Positions 2,897 to 63,775 of a DNA stretch of 64,000 nt are shown here, piece after piece (position 1 is the first letter of the stretch; each line of letters starts with the position of its first letter). Position numbers and translations under genes: made by a program. Where the stretch lies: the sequence record MN159079.1; one strand, written 5' to 3'. Under the pieces are notes generated by a model. The model was not told the DNA's origin and ran no database searches. It saw only the letters and a list, made by a program, of their open reading frames with translations.

Positions 2897-3294
2897 TTAC
2901 TCGTCAAACCTTTAAGAACTTGGATGCGGAACTTCCATCGCTTTCAAGCTTCTTTCTACCAAACATTCCGTGTGCGGAAGTTAATGGATACTTGGTGATC
3001 CAAGCCAATGCTAGGAAGTTTCCCGAGAAACTGCTTATGCTGGCCAGGAAGTATCCAGGAATCACGATCCAGCACTGCAATGGTAAATTGTTGTTCGGTG
3101 GATCATTAGTGGGACCTGGTATTCCTGAAAGAACGGAGAAAAGAGACGGGACGTTTACGTTTCATATCTCCACCTACCCAGAACTTGCGACACCTAGATT
3201 CTGGGCGACACTTTCTATGCTTGCTCAAGCCCAACGTAAAACCTGGGTCACCGAGTTCACAAGCTACCTGAAACCTGTACAAAACAACTATTAA
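2893..3294 (+). CDS. Hypothetical protein
   Basis: GTGA start/stop overlap with the upstream gene. Confidence 0.7.
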   Translation: MITRQTFKNLDAELPSLSSFFLPNIPCAEVNGYLVIQANARKFPEKLLMLARKYPGITIQHCNGKLLFGGSLVGPGIPERTEKRDGTFTFHISTYPELATPRFWATLSMLAQAQRKTWVTEFTSYLKPVQNNY

Positions 3295-3305
3295 GGAAAA
3301 AGATC

Positions 3306-4820
3306 ATGCAAAACACCAAAATGATGAGTGAGAACAAAGACTGGATCGTTTACAGCAACTACTGGCGCACCACCTCTCGGATCCTTGAACGCATGGGTGG
3401 TGAGTACACCAGCCAGGTTGAAATCAATCTGTCCGACGAGAACAACTCTGCCGAAGCTTTGGCGGAATTGCGTATTCGTCAACACACCACCCCACCGTCC
3501 CTTCGTGATGTGATCAGTCACTATTACGAAACTTCTGTCCACGACAAACTGGTTGAGTTGATCGGGCCTGATAAAGCCTGGATCGCTGAACACTGCAACA
3601 TCCTCCCGTTCATTGACTGGCCGGAGTATAACCGGAAATGTAATGGCGGGGTCCCGTTGATCGAGTGTCTGAAAGAACTGGCACCCCCGGTCCATGCGTA
3701 CAGTGCGGTGAACGCGGTCAAGTTGAACACGTATCCGACTCGTGAACAGTTCTTCTACGATTTCGTTCTTGATGAGTGGGATCGTGACCTGGGACATCTG
3801 GAGTTCATCTGTGGTTCCATCATTATGTATGCAGCTGCTTCCGCCAGGTTGTTCTTCATGTTCAATCCTTCCAGTGAGACATTCCATCTTTTCCTGAAGT
3901 GTCGTGACAGTGCTAACGGCAGTGCCCAGGTTATGATGAGTGCCGATTTGGAAGGTCTCAAGAAGTGGCATGAAAGTACTCGTGGGATGGTTAGCTCGTT
4001 CTTCCAGGATGACTACGAAGGGATCTATCCTGATACCGCCATTCTTCAAAAGGGGATGACGGATGGGATCAACTACCTGATCTGGAAATACCTGGTCAAA
4101 GATGTGATCACTGAGAAGCCCAAGGAAATCGAACGTCGTTGGATGATCACTGATCGCAAGGTAGCTCTCCAACGTCTTGTGGGCTCCGTGTGTAAGAGTG
4201 TTCAACAATTCTACACACCGGACGGCACCCGTTACCGCCAGACCATCAACGAAGACCAAATTACCACTTACGAGAAAACCGTGAAGACTGGTAAGGGTCT
4301 GGTCAGGACCGAAGTGAACACTCCGATCACTCACAAAGCGTATCTGGATATGTATCACGCGCTTGACTGTCCTAAGCCGGTGAATAAGCTCCGTTATGAA
4401 TACCATCACAAAGGCTATTGCTTTGATGTCGATGTTTACACCGACAACAAGATGATCACCGCTGAGCTGGAGTTCAAAACAGTCAAGGAAGCGAAAGAGT
4501 TCCATAAGGTACCTGATTGGTTCGGTGAAGAGATCACTGATCTGGAAGGCGTCAGTAACTTCGACATCTTCAAAACGATCAATGAAAAGCCGAAGGTAAC
4601 TCTGGAACAACTCACGATGCACATGAAAGGTCGTGAACTTCGTTTTGTTTACAAGAACTACCGTGGTGATGTAGCCACTCGCCGGGTATCTCGTCCGTTC
4701 TCTATCAAGTTCGGGTCTAACGAGTATCACGAAGAAGAACAGTGGTTGTTGGAAGCGTGGGATTTGGACAAGAACCTCCCTCGTGTATTCGCCATGAAAG
4801 ACATCATCGAGTTTAAATAA
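3306..4820 (+). CDS. Three-part protein: unknown N-terminal domain + CYTH (triphosphate tunnel metalloenzyme) + C-terminal WYL domain
   Basis: CYTH motifs KEIERRWMI, RYR, YEKTVK, KLRYEY, DVDVY, TAELEF, PDWFGEEIT; WYL motifs FVYKNYRGDVATRRV..P..IKFG...QWLLEAWDLDKNLPRVFAMKDI. Confidence 0.85.
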   Translation: MQNTKMMSENKDWIVYSNYWRTTSRILERMGGEYTSQVEINLSDENNSAEALAELRIRQHTTPPSLRDVISHYYETSVHDKLVELIGPDKAWIAEHCNILPFIDWPEYNRKCNGGVPLIECLKELAPPVHAYSAVNAVKLNTYPTREQFFYDFVLDEWDRDLGHLEFICGSIIMYAAASARLFFMFNPSSETFHLFLKCRDSANGSAQVMMSADLEGLKKWHESTRGMVSSFFQDDYEGIYPDTAILQKGMTDGINYLIWKYLVKDVITEKPKEIERRWMITDRKVALQRLVGSVCKSVQQFYTPDGTRYRQTINEDQITTYEKTVKTGKGLVRTEVNTPITHKAYLDMYHALDCPKPVNKLRYEYHHKGYCFDVDVYTDNKMITAELEFKTVKEAKEFHKVPDWFGEEITDLEGVSNFDIFKTINEKPKVTLEQLTMHMKGRELRFVYKNYRGDVATRRVSRPFSIKFGSNEYHEEEQWLLEAWDLDKNLPRVFAMKDIIEFK

Positions 4821-8149: not shown

Positions 8150-8165
8150 AGGTATCATTAACGTG
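8150..8165 (+). promoter_or_regulatory. Putative phage early promoter, copy 3
   Basis: AGGTATCATTAACGTG preceded by TATCTTTT. Confidence 0.55.
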
Positions 8166-9080: not shown

Positions 9081-9302
9081 ATGCCCATTGTGGAAATCTT
9101 TCTTGGTTTGTTGGCTTTACTGTACCTGTTTATAGGTTGGGAGATTTTCGCACCTATGGGTTGGTACTTCGGTGAGCCGTTCAAACGGACCTGGTATAAC
9201 AACGTGTTATACTTTATCGCATTCCCCACTGCTGTTGTGATGTGGTTGCCGATTCTCGCAGTCATTGTCATTGGTGGGGTGACGTTTAACCGCAAACCGT
9301 AA
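9081..9302 (+). CDS. Small membrane protein
   Basis: AAGGAG RBS; two or three hydrophobic segments. Confidence 0.75.
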   Translation: MPIVEIFLGLLALLYLFIGWEIFAPMGWYFGEPFKRTWYNNVLYFIAFPTAVVMWLPILAVIVIGGVTFNRKP

Positions 9303-9307
9303 ATAAA

Positions 9308-9337
9308 GCTAGAGCTACCCAAGCGGGTAGCTCTAGC
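9308..9337. terminator. Bidirectional terminator between convergent genes
   Basis: GCTAGAGCTACCC-AAGC-GGGTAGCTCTAGC with A/T-rich flanks. Confidence 0.85.
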
Positions 9338-9344
9338 TATTACA

Positions 9345-9962
9345 TTAATTATTTTTCGTTTTTGCCGCAATCACATGTTCGGCATAGAACACGGGAATAA
9401 CGTAGTTCTGCATGGCGACACAGAGTGGTGTCACACTTCCTGAGCGCTTCGTAGAGGCGTTTATTGCATTATCTATGGAAACGGTCAGCTTGTCCCAATA
9501 AAGGTCGCCAAGGAGTCCCTGGACATCTTTAATCGACTTCTTACCTGAATTGAGAACAATTGCGTATTCTTTCTTATCGGTAAGATAAAAGATCCCAAAG
9601 GAAACAACCTTATCTTCGATCTTCACAATGAGATCACTCTCTTTGATCTTGGTCGGAGCTATTTCAAAATCACGGAAGATGTCGAGCAGTGTTTGCTTCT
9701 CTATCAGTGCGTCGGCATGGAAATACGGAGCACCGGCCCTTGTCAGGAAACAAGCTCTCATGATTCCGTTCGCAAACGTCTTTACCGGTTCAATCTGTAC
9801 ATTATCGGGAGCTATCCCTAGATAACGCTGCCGGGCCAGATCTATCTTCTTTTGGTCGCCTTCGAGATGTATTTCGTTCAGTCGCTTAGTGACGTAAGCT
9901 TTGATGGCGGAGAAGACTGGATCTTTGATGACCTTACTCCGCTCTATTTTATCGGTGATCAT
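9345..9962 (-). CDS. Hypothetical protein (lone inverted gene)
   Basis: AGGAG RBS before ATG at 9962; about 205 aa; ends at the bidirectional terminator. Confidence 0.75.
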   Translation of the reverse strand: MITDKIERSKVIKDPVFSAIKAYVTKRLNEIHLEGDQKKIDLARQRYLGIAPDNVQIEPVKTFANGIMRACFLTRAGAPYFHADALIEKQTLLDIFRDFEIAPTKIKESDLIVKIEDKVVSFGIFYLTDKKEYAIVLNSGKKSIKDVQGLLGDLYWDKLTVSIDNAINASTKRSGSVTPLCVAMQNYVIPVFYAEHVIAAKTKNN

Positions 9963-10062
9963 AACGTTCTCCTGTAACTGGATCAAAAGATCCTTTTAGT
10001 AAAATACTAATCTTGTTATCTTAGGAGCGAATTCCGCTATTAATTTAAACTTGGAGTAAGGT

Positions 10063-10671
10063 ATGCAGATCAGAAAGCAATTTGATCCCAACAACCTTCC
10101 CGAAGATATCAACAGTATCTATGATCAGAGTCGCTACATTCCGAAACGTAGCGGTGGACCGAACACTCCTAACGAATGGTTTTGGAGTGATCTCCATATT
10201 GACCATTTACCAGCGCTTAAGGCGCGTGGTTGGTTCGGTACTTTACAAGAGTATCAAGATTACGTTGCATTTATCTGGGACACCCACGTTAAAGATATCG
10301 ACACCATTCACTTGGTAGGCGATATCGCATTAACATGGCAGGGGTTGCGTTGGATCAGCGAGAGGACTGGGAAGAAGATTCTCTATATGGGTAACCATGA
10401 CACAGAACGCGAGAACTGTATTCGTGACCTCCTCTCTGTTTACGACGACATCAGGGGATTCTGGAAACACAAGAAAGGTTTCTACATTGGACATTGCCCA
10501 AGTCACCCTAGTGAGTTACGTGGAAGAAGAATGATCCATGGCCATACTCACACCAAGGTAATACAAGATCAGCGCTTCATTAACGTTGCTATCGATCTTC
10601 TTCCTAACGGTCCTGTTAACATGAAGGACTTGGTGTCAGGAGATTACCGTAGTTATCGAGACCCTGCATAA
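10063..10671 (+). CDS. Calcineurin-like metallophosphoesterase
   Basis: All five family motifs: WSDLH, VGD, GNHD, GHCP, HGHTH. Confidence 0.9.
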   Translation: MQIRKQFDPNNLPEDINSIYDQSRYIPKRSGGPNTPNEWFWSDLHIDHLPALKARGWFGTLQEYQDYVAFIWDTHVKDIDTIHLVGDIALTWQGLRWISERTGKKILYMGNHDTERENCIRDLLSVYDDIRGFWKHKKGFYIGHCPSHPSELRGRRMIHGHTHTKVIQDQRFINVAIDLLPNGPVNMKDLVSGDYRSYRDPA

Positions 10672-10674
10672 ACT

Positions 10675-10706
10675 AATCCATCACTGCCTTAGGGTGGTGA
10701 TGGGTT
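10675..10706 (+). terminator. Hairpin, probable terminator
   Basis: AATCCATCACTGCC-TTAG-GGTGGTGATGGGTT (with G-U pairs). Confidence 0.6.
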
Positions 10707-10727
10707 GATCTCCATATCTTTTCAAGT

Positions 10728-10743
10728 AGATATTATCTAAGTG
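10728..10743 (+). promoter_or_regulatory. Putative phage early promoter, copy 4
   Basis: TATCTTTTCAAGT-AGATATTATCTAAGTG. Confidence 0.65.
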
Positions 10744-10775
10744 CATTCATAATCAAAATTGCTAAGGAGCAATAA

Positions 10776-11249
10776 ATGAATCTCTTAAATAAAGCACTCG
10801 TCAAAATGTTCATGTTGGCAGGTTGCCGGAGTCGAATCTGTGGGAGGGATCGTCAAGTCTTCATTCTGAAGAAATGTGTGGTGAAGATACCGGTGATGTC
10901 CAATGGCTGGTTTGAATTCGTCCGTGGTTATTATTCCAATCTCAAAGAGATGGATAGCATCCGAGGTTACGAAGGTAATTTCCAGGAACATCTTCCAGAA
11001 ATACTGGGGAGTTATTTATTTGGGTTAGTCGTCGTTTACAAGAAATATCGTGAGATTATGGATGGTAAAGATGACAATGAAACCGGCGACTTTGCCGAGT
11101 ACACTAGGTTCCTAGGTAAACTTGATGACATCCGGAGAAATGAGAAAAACTCAGAAAAATATATCTGGACTCAAGACACCAAGATCTTTAACTTCGGCTG
11201 GGATAAATATGGCCGGGTGGTAGTCATCGATCTGGGGACACCTTACTAA
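10776..11249 (+). CDS. Minimal protein-kinase-like protein A
   Basis: GRDRQV (Gly-loop), VVKIP (beta3 Lys), NLKE (alphaC Glu), DTKIFN (catalytic DxxxxN), IDLG (DFG equivalent); ends 3 aa later. Confidence 0.75.
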   Translation: MNLLNKALVKMFMLAGCRSRICGRDRQVFILKKCVVKIPVMSNGWFEFVRGYYSNLKEMDSIRGYEGNFQEHLPEILGSYLFGLVVVYKKYREIMDGKDDNETGDFAEYTRFLGKLDDIRRNEKNSEKYIWTQDTKIFNFGWDKYGRVVVIDLGTPY

Positions 11250-11265
11250 CAAAGAGGGAATAATT

Positions 11266-11664
11266 ATGTCTGAAGTAAACATGAGTGAACTTATGAAGAA
11301 AGTTCATGAGAAAGGAATGAAAGCGTTTGAGGAAATGGACCATAAGGAGCGCTGGGCTTTCTGGACCGCAGTTTCCGTCCCACCTCTCCGTTTTGTTCTT
11401 CGTAACGCAATGTCTTGCGAAGATAAGAAGTTGCGGTATGACCATCGTGACATTTCGTTGGTGCTGGGTTACGTATTGGGAATGTACAAGGTCGCTCCCA
11501 TCCGTGACCTCATGAACAGTCAATCCATTCGCCTGGCCATTGTGGTTCTCCTGGACGCAATGACCGAGATGAAAGAAATGGATACGGTCATGGATGACAT
11601 GGTCAATATCGCGGCCAAAACGATGAACACCATCGACAACAAGATACTCTACTATTACCAATAG
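11266..11664 (+). CDS. Hypothetical all-helical, Met-rich protein between the two kinase-like genes
   Basis: GAGGG RBS, 132 aa. Confidence 0.75.
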   Translation: MSEVNMSELMKKVHEKGMKAFEEMDHKERWAFWTAVSVPPLRFVLRNAMSCEDKKLRYDHRDISLVLGYVLGMYKVAPIRDLMNSQSIRLAIVVLLDAMTEMKEMDTVMDDMVNIAAKTMNTIDNKILYYYQ

Positions 11665-11672
11665 GCGGGTGT

Positions 11673-12062
11673 ATGAAACCTGAAGTCATTGGAACAACTC
11701 GCCACGTAAGGTTATTCAAACATTTCGTGGTAAAGTTTCCTAGGATGACAACGTGGTATGAGAAAGGCTTTAATCTAAGAGTCTTTCTCAATAACCTTTA
11801 TCTCAATCGTAGAGAGCGCAGATTGGCAAAGAAGTATAAGGGAGCCGAAGGTATTCCTCATATTTACTTTGCAGACCCATTCGGTTTTGTTGTTGTAATG
11901 AAACGTTATAACACTAACCTGAAGACTGAACAATTCTGCGCACTTTATAATTCACTACTCGACAGGACTGAAATAGATCCTGAATTTTGGGAAGATGATT
12001 CGACTGTCCCTAACTTCGGTTTAACTGAGGACGGGAAACTTGTTAAAATTGATTTGGGGTAA
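11673..12062 (+). CDS. Minimal protein-kinase-like protein B
   Basis: GTTRHV, VVKFP, NRRE, PHIYFADPFGFVVVMKRY, DSTVPNFG, KIDLG-stop; colinear with 10776..11249. Confidence 0.75.
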   Translation: MKPEVIGTTRHVRLFKHFVVKFPRMTTWYEKGFNLRVFLNNLYLNRRERRLAKKYKGAEGIPHIYFADPFGFVVVMKRYNTNLKTEQFCALYNSLLDRTEIDPEFWEDDSTVPNFGLTEDGKLVKIDLG

Positions 12063-12065
12063 CTA

Positions 12066-12422
12066 ATGCAACACTGTACTTTTGATACTGTAGGTGAATT
12101 GGTAGGCGTCTTAAATGGTCTCGGGAAACCCGAAGCCATGGTGGATAGCTTTTATGTCTATGAACGACAGGAAAGAAACTACATCGTGATGGAACAAACT
12201 GATGAAGGTGAAACTTCTTTCAACTTTGCTCCAGTTCGTCACCGTCACCCTTATCAAGGTTATGACGATATTGTAATCTCGTCCTCACTTACAGTGGGTA
12301 AGTTTATCGAGATGTTAGAAACTTTCCCGCTGGATACGCACATCAAGTACATCCGGTTGAAAGGTGCCGACAACATGGTGGCAATGAACGTTGAAGAAGA
12401 CGGCATTGTAATCCACGATTAA
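12066..12422 (+). CDS. Hypothetical protein with an internal duplication
   Basis: TVGELVGVLNGL and TVGKFIEMLETFP repeats. Confidence 0.7.
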   Translation: MQHCTFDTVGELVGVLNGLGKPEAMVDSFYVYERQERNYIVMEQTDEGETSFNFAPVRHRHPYQGYDDIVISSSLTVGKFIEMLETFPLDTHIKYIRLKGADNMVAMNVEEDGIVIHD

Positions 12423-18563: not shown

Positions 18564-18579
18564 AGATATTATTAGGGTG
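18564..18579 (+). promoter_or_regulatory. Putative phage early promoter, copy 5
   Basis: TTTTTGAAGC-AGATATTATTAGGGTG. Confidence 0.65.
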
Positions 18580-23623: not shown

Positions 23624-23639
23624 CGATATTATTACAGTG
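23624..23639 (+). promoter_or_regulatory. Putative phage early promoter, copy 7
   Basis: CGATATTATTACAGTG after the terminator. Confidence 0.65.
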
Positions 23640-23707: not shown

Positions 23708-24439
23708 ATGATTAACGAACAAATGCTTGCTGGTGCCATTCGTAAGGCGATCGAACCCCTGACTTCAATCGAGGATAACAACCTCTTTATGTTTGAAGTA
23801 GGTCAGGTACTCTGTCGGTTTAAAACCAACGTTTACATGATGTTGGACGAAGACATGTGTTACCGAGATCCCAACGAGCTGATTAACTTTGTCATCACTG
23901 CTGGTGCGGACGTTGTTAATGCGGGCGGGTACACTGAGATCATTAAACGTGACCGAACCGTTCTTCGGATTTCTGGTGTTCATGATTACGGTGCGACTAC
24001 CCTGGAACAGGGACACGAGTTCTTGTACAACGAAGATATCAGCGATCTCATCCCTGCCGACCGTTTGGTCAGAATGCACGATACCCATTTCATGAGTGCA
24101 CGTCAAGAAGGGGAAGGTGCACCCAAGAACGATCTGGAACGATTCGAATCCTTAGGGTTCAATCTGGAAAGTGCTCACGGTTATCATTTCAACACTGATC
24201 GTTTCCTGGATTCCAGGGCCACTGTAAGTATGACCATCAGTGGTCGTGTCTTCGCTGCGGCGTACGCTAAGAAGCGTCGTGAAACAGCCGAACGTCATCC
24301 TGGGTCTGAAGGTCGTTATCTCAGTCAGGGTCGTGAAGCTAATCGGTTGCAACGACTGGAAGATGAAAGTAATCCTGTTCCGGAAGAACGTCCTGGTTTA
24401 TCCGGTCGTCAGTTCCACATGCAATTCATGGCTAAGTAA
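23708..24439 (+). CDS. Hypothetical protein
   Basis: GAGG RBS, 243 aa. Confidence 0.75.
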   Translation: MINEQMLAGAIRKAIEPLTSIEDNNLFMFEVGQVLCRFKTNVYMMLDEDMCYRDPNELINFVITAGADVVNAGGYTEIIKRDRTVLRISGVHDYGATTLEQGHEFLYNEDISDLIPADRLVRMHDTHFMSARQEGEGAPKNDLERFESLGFNLESAHGYHFNTDRFLDSRATVSMTISGRVFAAAYAKKRRETAERHPGSEGRYLSQGREANRLQRLEDESNPVPEERPGLSGRQFHMQFMAK

Positions 24440-24448
24440 GGAATGTAA

Positions 24449-25015
24449 ATGAGTAATCTCGTAATCTTAGAAACCAAGGGCAGGGGTTTTTGGAAACCCA
24501 TAATTTCCGAAGATGGTGCCAAGTGGGTCGAAACAAATGTTCCCCCTCACTTTGGTTCCATCCAGGCGCACTCCACAATCATGTCGGTGGGCTATCACTG
24601 GAAGAAACATGCTGTACTGTTTAGCATCATGGGTACCTTGCGTGGATACGACATCTTTATTAACGCATGGTCCCTTACAACCGACACCTGTACCCCTCGT
24701 CTGGTAAGAGTAAGGTTGGAAGGTCAACCACTTGGATGGCTTTCCAAAGAGGAATCCCTGCGGTACCTCAAACGTTGGTTGTTGAGTGAAGGGCTCTACA
24801 CAGTGGCAGGTTATCCTCCCAGAACCAGGAAGATGATCTATCAGATGCTGGAGGAGATAAAGGATGATCACGTAACCACTTACTACCCTGGCTATCTATA
24901 CAGGTTAAGTAAACATCATGGTCGTTGGCGTTTATCTCACGACGGAAAAGTTTGCCTGGATATCAATCATCTCAATCAAATCACTCAAGCCAATCTGTAC
25001 CATTTGGCCGTGTAA
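24449..25015 (+). CDS. Hypothetical protein
   Basis: AAGGA RBS, 188 aa. Confidence 0.75.
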   Translation: MSNLVILETKGRGFWKPIISEDGAKWVETNVPPHFGSIQAHSTIMSVGYHWKKHAVLFSIMGTLRGYDIFINAWSLTTDTCTPRLVRVRLEGQPLGWLSKEESLRYLKRWLLSEGLYTVAGYPPRTRKMIYQMLEEIKDDHVTTYYPGYLYRLSKHHGRWRLSHDGKVCLDINHLNQITQANLYHLAV

Positions 25016-63759: not shown

Positions 63760-63775
63760 CGATATTATTAAGGTG
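63760..63775 (+). promoter_or_regulatory. Putative phage early promoter, copy 10
   Basis: TATCTTTTCAAAT-CGATATTATTAAGGTG. Confidence 0.65.

Follow-up and report, generated by a model that had tools for sequence, protein, structure and literature searches.

Several protein-kinase-like (PKL) enzymes are known that lack parts of the canonical kinase domain. The effectors OspG of Shigella and NleH of enteropathogenic and enterohaemorrhagic Escherichia coli (EPEC/EHEC) have the PKL fold without Hanks subdomains VIII–XI and are active kinases nevertheless, OspG being activated in trans by ubiquitin-charged E2 (E2~Ub) (PMC12756638). The archaeal tRNA 2′-kinase ArkI, a small PKL of 171–216 aa, shows that minimal PKLs can phosphorylate RNA; it retains subdomains IX and XI together with a basic tRNA-binding helix and has the motifs HGQ and DFE in place of HRD and DFG (PMC9095486). 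Bud32/PRPK of the KEOPS complex, which is among the smallest PKLs, has no activation segment and works via a partner, and the RIO enzymes, which have no activation loop, act as ATPases. To our knowledge, all characterised PKL enzymes retain at least part of the helical C-lobe. Here we describe two genes of Aeromonas phage D9 (MN159079.1, 260,857 bp), a jumbo phage of the genus Ludhianavirus, that lie in a stretch of 64,000 nucleotides (the window) whose coordinates are those of the record. They encode proteins of 157 and 129 aa for which a PKL fold is confidently predicted (from a model of the 129-aa protein and from motifs in both) and which, like OspG and NleH, have no subdomains VIII–XI. 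We infer that they are, most likely, minimal ATP-dependent phosphotransferases or ATPases that serve as accessory host-takeover genes.

The two proteins and their predicted fold

The two genes flank a third one, and all three are open reading frames (ORFs) on the same strand:

10776..11249, + strand, A-type mini protein-kinase-like protein, 157 aa (ORF, phrog_4301 profile match, motifs)
11266..11664, + strand, lineage-specific ORFan of 132 aa between the paralogues (ORF, codon differences versus phage LAh10)
11673..12062, + strand, B-type mini protein-kinase-like protein, 129 aa (ORF, phrog_4301 profile match, AlphaFold2 model)

BLASTP aligns the 157-aa and the 129-aa protein colinearly along 144 columns with 31% identity (E 6e-14, as a single comparison), and the motifs G-x-x-R-x-V, V-V-K-x-P, N-x-x-E, F-G-x-V-V-V, N-F-G and I-D-L-G are common to both. 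The 129-aa protein has the Gly of I-D-L-G as its C-terminus and the 157-aa protein continues for three further residues (TPY). An earlier interpretation made from the letters alone (the sequence-only reading) had described two colinear paralogous ORFs with their motifs in register and ending 0–3 residues past IDLG, which BLASTP and the alignment confirm. The key residues of the 157-aa protein are G23, R26, K37 (the β3 Lys), N55 and E58 (αC), D134-T-K-I-F-N139 (catalytic loop) and D152-L-G; those of the 129-aa protein are G7, R10, K21, N45 and E48, D109-S-T-V-P-N114 and D127-L-G129. In the latter the catalytic-loop Lys is replaced by Thr, Asp and Asn being retained. The 157-aa protein is also extended by 22 residues at its N-terminus and carries an insert preceding the αE-like helix. 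The 22 residues look like an extra helix peculiar to A-type copies. A lipoprotein signal considered in this region (L-A-G-C, residues 14–17, 10815–10826) was rejected: the Cys is not conserved in the orthologues, the hydrophobic region is short, and the resemblance is probably due to chance.

Both proteins match the profile phrog_4301, the 157-aa protein with E 4.9e-14 and the 129-aa protein with E 2.1e-10; the profile is labelled "unknown function" in PHROG. Searches with the single D9 proteins against Pfam (E ≤ 10), NCBIfam, PADLOC and the sequences of the PDB gave nothing significant.

The fold was predicted with AlphaFold2 (AF2) for the 129-aa protein from an alignment of 140 family sequences, with a mean predicted local distance difference test (pLDDT) of 94.4 and a predicted template modelling score (pTM) of 0.84; this run superseded one with an alignment of three sequences (pLDDT 37). 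In the model, strands 10–14 and 18–23 correspond to the Gly-rich loop and the strand of the β3 Lys, helix 35–54 to αC, strands 64–67 and 74–77 to β4 and β5, helix 85–98 to an αE-like helix, residues 109–114 to the catalytic loop and residues 127–129 to the DFG equivalent. A PKL N-lobe has a five-stranded β-sheet plus αC; the AF2 strands and helix agree with this, and the model superposes on PRPK and other kinases. By sequence, the β3 Lys and the αC Glu are K21 and E48 in the 129-aa and K37 and E58 in the 157-aa protein; the catalytic loop, with Asp or Glu and Asn or Ser in the family, reads D-T-K-I-F-N and D-S-T-V-P-N in the 157-aa and the 129-aa protein, respectively; and the Mg-binding Asp of DFG lies in D-Y-G in the family and in D-L-G in both D9 proteins. 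The helical C-lobe from αF onward (subdomains VIII–XI) is absent from both.

Structure searches with the model returned kinases almost throughout. Foldseek, proposed as a check in the sequence-only reading, was run against the PDB and found Rio2 (1zar and 1zao, E 2e-3), RIOK2, Bud32/PRPK, AceK, WbdD, MLKL and APH, and a search of AFDB-SwissProt found Bud32 and Rio2. Aligned with VIA, PRPK gave Z 9.2 with a root-mean-square deviation of 3.1 Å over 125 of the 129 residues, model residues 1–129 lying on PRPK 36–185. A search of 48,161 chains independent of Foldseek gave Bud32 (Z 8.7), Rio2 (8.4), ArkI (7.9) and OspG (6.8), and its top 50 were kinases except for SAICAR synthetase, with which they have the ATP-binding core in common. 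The structural neighbours in the ESM Atlas are Bud32, RIO1 and APH clusters, and the matches in BFVD include the paralogues of phages PS1 and D6, the homologue of phage RP12 and many annotated phage kinases; the RP12 homologue is automatically labelled "Protein kinase domain-containing protein" by UniProt. It should be noted that Z-scores of 8–9 are only moderately above the aligner's stated background of 7–8, which is why the fold is assigned from the uniformity of the kinase matches together with the match of the motifs. With respect to the latter, DxKxxNFG ... IDYG of the family profile aligns with HSDLKPANF...IDFG of the kinase TTK (catalytic loop and DFG), and the sub-threshold matches of single members are all to kinases and to the same segment (ABC1 with E 4e-4, RIO1, PknB, LanL, PD-T4-6). 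The PKL fold with its catalytic motifs and with the stop after the DFG equivalent, as proposed from the letters, has therefore held up in the AF2 model, the Foldseek and VIA matches, the TTK profile match and the conservation within the family.

Among the ESM Atlas neighbours of 11673–12059 there is also a viral cluster of 408-aa proteins that combine Methyltransf_23 with the mini-kinase fold (template modelling score 0.70 by query). These proteins recall the bifunctional kinase-methyltransferase WbdD, which is itself one of the Foldseek matches.

The PHROG 4301 family

A word-index homologue search yielded few relatives, and the extent of the family was taken from an exhaustive search of 1.84 billion cluster representatives with a hidden Markov model (HMM) profile, which brought the number of relatives to 173 (E ≤ 1e-3). 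Their length is 115–150 aa in nearly all cases and typically about 120 aa. Conservation was counted in an alignment of 140 of the 173 representatives, in which (in the numbering of the 129-aa protein) R10 and K21 are invariant (140/140 each) and G7, E48 and D127 are each conserved in 139/140; V12, P23, N45, G71 and G116 are also near-invariant, and D127 is followed by Tyr-Gly. Position 109 is Asp in 95 and Glu in 45 sequences, position 114 is Asn in 101 and Ser in 37, and Lys is found at position 111 in 96 of 140. The residues of the loop vary together: the combination D-K-N was counted 53 times and E-K-S 37 times, with every one of the 37 Ser paired with Glu. This pattern fits two cooperating side chains and may be compensatory; it may instead mark a single clade.

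In 98 of the 140 sequences the chain ends three or fewer residues past the Gly of DYG, the median tail being one residue. The few longer members (up to 350 aa; 209 aa in RP12) have in common only a short extension, D-Y-G-Y-F-G-G...Y-L-G, beyond which their tails are mutually unrelated and gave no match in Pfam. The idea that the longer members regain a C-lobe was thus rejected; their tails being unrelated, no member of the family has a canonical C-lobe. Because most chains stop within three residues of DYG and the catalytic residues are near-invariant, the short form, comprising Hanks subdomains I–VII only, is the native and conserved architecture rather than a truncation or a broken gene.

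Family members are in general basic (median isoelectric point, pI, 9.07; 79% above pI 8). Scans of cellular genomes found no relatives of PHROG 4301, and the clusters in the ESM Atlas are mostly viral. There is no Pfam model for PHROG 4301, literature searches on the family or on minimal phage kinases found no paper, and standard annotation evidently does not flag it.

In the Aeromonas jumbo phages, A and B form two separate orthologous groups across three genera, with 26–35% identity between A and B; as both groups span the genera, the duplication therefore predates them. The A-type proteins (orthologues 37–68% identical) have the signature G-R-D-R-Q-V and D-x-K-[IV]-F-N, and the orthologues of the 157-aa protein in phages PS1, CF8, AerS_266, ZPAH34 and AhC3_1 are 37–53% identical. 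The B-type proteins (orthologues 43–85% identical, those of the 129-aa protein 43–47%) are characterised by G-T-x-R-H, a 7-residue insert after Trp, a catalytic loop without Lys and a C-terminus that is exactly K-I-D-L-G. In AhC3_1 the two copies are 3 kb apart. CF8 has the A copy only, followed by a homologue of the gene that is next after B in D9 (orf118), and B must therefore be dispensable. The B copy is drifting from the canonical active site, because the B copies of the Chaoshanvirus phages, AerS_b and ZPAH_b, have replaced the Asn and the Gly of the catalytic loop in addition.

This divergence bears on the idea that the proteins are catalytically dead pseudokinases or nucleotide-binding decoys that act by binding alone and might for example sequester a host factor or a nucleotide. 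The B-type copies, AerS_b and ZPAH_b in particular, would suit such a role, and small size together with the absent C-lobe makes catalysis uncertain in any case. However, the near-invariance of the Lys, the Glu and both acidic residues in 140 diverse representatives, and the D/N–E/S covariation, are hard to explain without chemistry at the site, and we consider this idea very unlikely.

Gene order in D9 and at other loci

The D9 region is 95–99.5% identical to that of the phages D3, D6 and LAh10, which are likewise Ludhianavirus jumbo phages of Aeromonas hydrophila. The codon differences between D9 and LAh10 (synonymous/non-synonymous) are 20/1 in the 157-aa gene, 18/6 in the 132-aa gene and 11/0 in the 129-aa gene; because of this synonymous excess all three ORFs are real genes on which purifying selection acts. 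A biofilm metagenome (2024, run X5) contains a relative of 9300–12379 that is 90–99% identical at a word depth of about 110x and keeps the D9 gene order, middle gene included. Contigs of two RNA libraries touch both mini-kinase genes at low depth, which is no proof of transcription.

From the arrangement of the three genes a three-gene early phosphorylation module had been proposed, in which the 132-aa protein would supply the missing C-lobe or substrate specificity or would inhibit the kinases. The genes are indeed co-oriented, tightly spaced and behind one promoter-like motif, and the 132-aa gene is under purifying selection. Against the module, the middle gene is found in the four near-identical Ludhianavirus genomes D9, D3, D6 and LAh10 only, and it is missing where A and B adjoin or overlap: in PS1 (Ferozepurvirus) the two genes lie at 24068–24481 and 24481–24882, and in AerS_266 and ZPAH34 (Chaoshanvirus) they overlap by 4 nt, in each case with no gene between them. 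The 132-aa protein found no match in Pfam, PHROG, NCBIfam, PADLOC or the PDB and shows no similarity to the tails of the long family members. The idea that it is a split-off C-lobe acting in trans was therefore rejected: it is an ORFan of four genomes, unlike the kinases, unlike those tails and unlike solved structures. Moreover, a PHROG 4301 gene usually stands alone, with no partner gene conserved beside it. A recurrent partner was sought in 63 IMG/VR loci, and no neighbour cluster occurred in more than four of them, those four being near-identical genomes; the conservation of the gene neighbourhood that the module implied is thus not seen. As a general mechanism the three-gene module is largely refuted, and we regard it as highly improbable. 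The 132-aa gene is best described as an apparently unrelated, lineage-specific insertion. Its start is annotated much further upstream in the LAh10 record (1626–2165 of that locus), where it overlaps the 157-aa gene; the starts in D3 and D6 are near 11266.

The genes and elements around the locus are as follows:

10063–10671, metallophosphoesterase, annotated as Ser/Thr phosphatase in D9 (PHROG 547, E 1e-39)
10674..10707, + strand, RNA hairpin with a 15-bp stem (−22.6 kcal/mol, z −5.4; 0 of 200 shuffles fold as well)
10712..10743, + strand, promoter-like repeat copy with the core GATATTATCTAAGTG at 10729–10743, belonging to the 32-nt direct-repeat family D1
435–449, 8151–8165, 10729–10743, 18565–18579, 23625–23639 and 63761–63775, + strand, exact copies of GRTATYATYWNNGTG
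1160, 22046 and 38990, + strand, and 10285–10299, − strand, copies of GRTATYATYWNNGTG with one mismatch
12066–12422, orf118, an acidic 118-aa gene (pI 4.7; phrog_13970), next after the 129-aa gene

The motif GRTATYATYWNNGTG, which lies inside the 32-nt repeat, occurs 10 times in the window versus 1.0 expected, mostly on the + strand, and its copies are mostly 33–110 nt 5′ of + strand ATGs. Because the spacing does not fit σ70, the repeat is read as a phage-specific promoter class, which it may well be. The 157-aa gene has its ATG 33 nt past the end of the copy at 10729–10743, which is the fourth member of the family; the mini-kinase genes are thus placed directly behind repeat copy 4, as the sequence-only reading had it. 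The hairpin sits between the stop of the phosphoesterase gene and this copy and may divide transcription units, either by termination or by RNA processing; a canonical U-tract is absent from it, and a terminator scan did not list it.

The metallophosphoesterase gene directly upstream of the mini-kinases is absent at the syntenic site in Chaoshanvirus. The upstream minus-strand genes of D9 and AerS_266 are orthologous to each other (36% identity, E 5e-36), and from this orthology it follows that the phosphoesterase gene and the middle gene are Ludhianavirus-specific additions. The adjacency of kinase and phosphatase genes is thus lineage-specific. On the other side, a homologue of orf118 (35% identity, E 3e-15) is also found 3′ of the mini-kinase locus in CF8, and orf118 is, unlike the B copy, a stable downstream neighbour.

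Outside the Aeromonas jumbo phages PHROG 4301 is single-copy. The immediate neighbours are heterogeneous, including Mu-F head proteins, DUF551, NUDIX, dATP/dGTP pyrophosphohydrolase, the Thoeris inhibitor Tad6, primases and integrases, a pattern which is that of a mobile accessory gene. For example, the N4-like phage phi G17 has its member among small hypothetical genes, and the T4-like coliphage Bas45 (PaulHMueller) has it between ipI and a tRNA cluster; the PS1 copies also lie near a tRNA cluster. Further carriers are the Ralstonia jumbo phage RP12 and the Aeromonas phages 2L372X and 2L372D. In the T4-like coliphage JS10 the member (2977–3345 of the locus) is 1 nt upstream of rnlB, the gene for RNA ligase 2 (3347–4354). 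The adjacency in JS10 hints at an RNA-related role and was not seen in other loci.

These neighbours raise the possibility of a kinase that does not act on proteins: one for RNA or tRNA as is ArkI, for a sugar or glycan as is WbdD, or for a small molecule or nucleotide signal as is APH. Such an activity would agree with the presence of ArkI among the top structural matches (Z 7.9–8.0), with the basic character of the family, with the rnlB and tRNA neighbours just mentioned, with the viral Methyltransf_23 proteins of the same fold and the Foldseek match to WbdD, and with the fact that some neighbours are nucleotide hydrolases or Tad6. But subdomains IX and XI and the basic C-terminal tRNA-binding helix of ArkI are absent from the phage proteins, APH and WbdD need helical substrate subdomains, and most other family members have no RNA ligase gene beside them. 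A family-wide link to tRNA genes was considered and found weak: of 60 viral loci, 9 have such genes at a distance of up to 6 kb, a number that may reflect no more than the location of the genes in hypervariable accessory regions. On balance we judge a non-protein substrate to be rather unlikely.

Comparison with known kinases and possible function

The likeness of the D9 proteins to OspG is structural only: residues 1–129 of the model align with OspG 30–159 (Z 6.8), and OspG is absent from the matches of the family profile against the PDB at E ≤ 10. OspG differs in having about 40 further C-terminal residues past the aligned part, whereas the phage proteins end at the Gly of DFG or close to it. 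These C-terminal residues of OspG are helical and include the partner-binding surface. OspG is, moreover, an effector that is injected into animal cells, whereas the D9 proteins are encoded by phage genes acting in bacteria. Bud32/PRPK, the best structural match, is larger (about 195–260 aa), has helices in the C-lobe, extends with its C-terminal tail into Kae1, and is 16–17% identical to the 129-aa model; no gene for a Kae1- or Cgi121-like partner was found near family members among the loci examined. Rio2/RIOK2, the top Foldseek matches in the PDB, differ in having a full C-lobe, a winged-helix domain (in Rio2) and another P-loop motif; in the phage family, unlike in RIO, the motif is G-x-[ST]-R-x-V, of which the Arg is invariant. 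The D9 proteins had no match to RIO1, Kdo or APH of Pfam at E ≤ 10, and one relative matched RIO1 on the catalytic loop and DFG with E 0.14, which is below the cut-off.

The similarity to Bud32 and RIO suggests another alternative, namely that the proteins are nucleotide-dependent switches or ATPases. They would attach to a complex of the host or the phage, as Bud32 does to KEOPS and RIO to pre-40S particles, and by binding and hydrolysing ATP would promote or block a step, no substrate being phosphorylated. This would agree with these two being the best matches, with the absence of all substrate-binding parts, and with the conserved residues being those for Mg-ATP binding and hydrolysis. However, D-x-K-x-x-N, which is typical of phosphotransfer to hydroxyl groups, is kept in most members, and no conserved partner gene was found in the 63 IMG/VR loci. 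Nor is an obvious host complex implied, because bacterial synthesis of t6A uses TsaB/TsaE rather than Bud32. We give this alternative a low probability, similar to that of the non-protein substrate.

With respect to phage biology a comparison is offered by the gp0.7 kinase of T7 (T7K), a phage PKL that functions in early host takeover and has a broad anti-defence effect by promiscuous phosphorylation (PMC13645617). Of the clusters with a Pfam model, that of T7 gp0.7 is the closest in language-model features (similarity 0.92), and this is the only link between the two. T7K belongs nevertheless to a different family: the D9 proteins match neither PF27024 (E ≤ 10) nor PHROG 2828 (E ≤ 1), and in T7K the kinase domain is complete, at about 240 aa, with DPV in place of DFG, and a C-terminal DNA-binding/shut-off domain is present.

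In the reading that we prefer, A and B would be stand-alone minimal PKL domains that depend on Mg-ATP and act as accessory genes of host takeover or anti-defence; for this reading in full, inferred activity included, we see about an even chance. Each domain would consist of an N-lobe β-sheet with Gly-rich loop, β3 Lys and αC Glu, of an αE-like helix, of D-x-K-x-x-N and of the DFG-like Asp, after which the chain ends. The A copy, which has the full catalytic set, would bind Mg-ATP and transfer or hydrolyse the γ-phosphate in an active site that would be unusually open. For recognition of the substrate it would rely on the target itself or on a host or phage partner, as is the case for OspG with E2~Ub or for Bud32 with Kae1. 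The B copy, having lost the catalytic-loop Lys, might be a weaker enzyme or a regulatory partner, and the stop-start overlap of A and B in the sister genera would fit translational coupling or co-expression. Both genes would be transcribed from the phage promoter-like repeat and would behave as accessory host-takeover or anti-defence genes.

Several points weigh against this reading, in addition to the modest Z-scores. The B copy has no catalytic-loop Lys, and in AerS_b and ZPAH_b the loop Asn and Gly are missing as well. The search for a recurrent partner gene in the 63 IMG/VR loci came back empty. We know of no characterised PKL enzyme in which the αF helix does not scaffold the C-lobe; this scaffold is predicted to be absent here, and stability and catalysis without a partner are hence uncertain. 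Finally, Bud32 and RIO, to which the model is structurally closest, work mainly as ATPases that form part of complexes.

What is known already is the superfamily and the existence of minimal kinases without subdomains VIII–XI (OspG/NleH); what is new, and more extreme, is a widespread and conserved family of stand-alone proteins of 115–130 aa that end exactly at DFG. The minimal PKLs described so far run past the DFG equivalent, ArkI with subdomains IX and XI, and the alignments with the model stop within the chains at residue 185 of PRPK and residue 159 of OspG. One may go further and propose, tentatively and with more doubt than confidence, that PHROG 4301 is the smallest self-sufficient catalytic kinase fold (115–130 residues, Hanks I–VII, no αF), that its members are active phosphotransferases in which the target or a second copy completes the substrate site (in the Aeromonas jumbo phages as an A/B heterodimer), and that they are unrecognised host-modifying or anti-defence kinases in many unrelated phages, T4-like coliphages included. 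A survey of protein kinases in the BASEL phages covered the T7K homologues and the P1 Doc kinase, not the Bas45 member (PMC13645617). Since members are found in tractable phages, BASEL Bas45 (PaulHMueller), JS10 and phi G17, the question is directly testable. If active, a family that stops at DFG with all ATP and Mg residues in place would represent the irreducible catalytic core of the kinase fold, and it would add an unannotated class of kinases to the repertoires of phages for host takeover and anti-defence.

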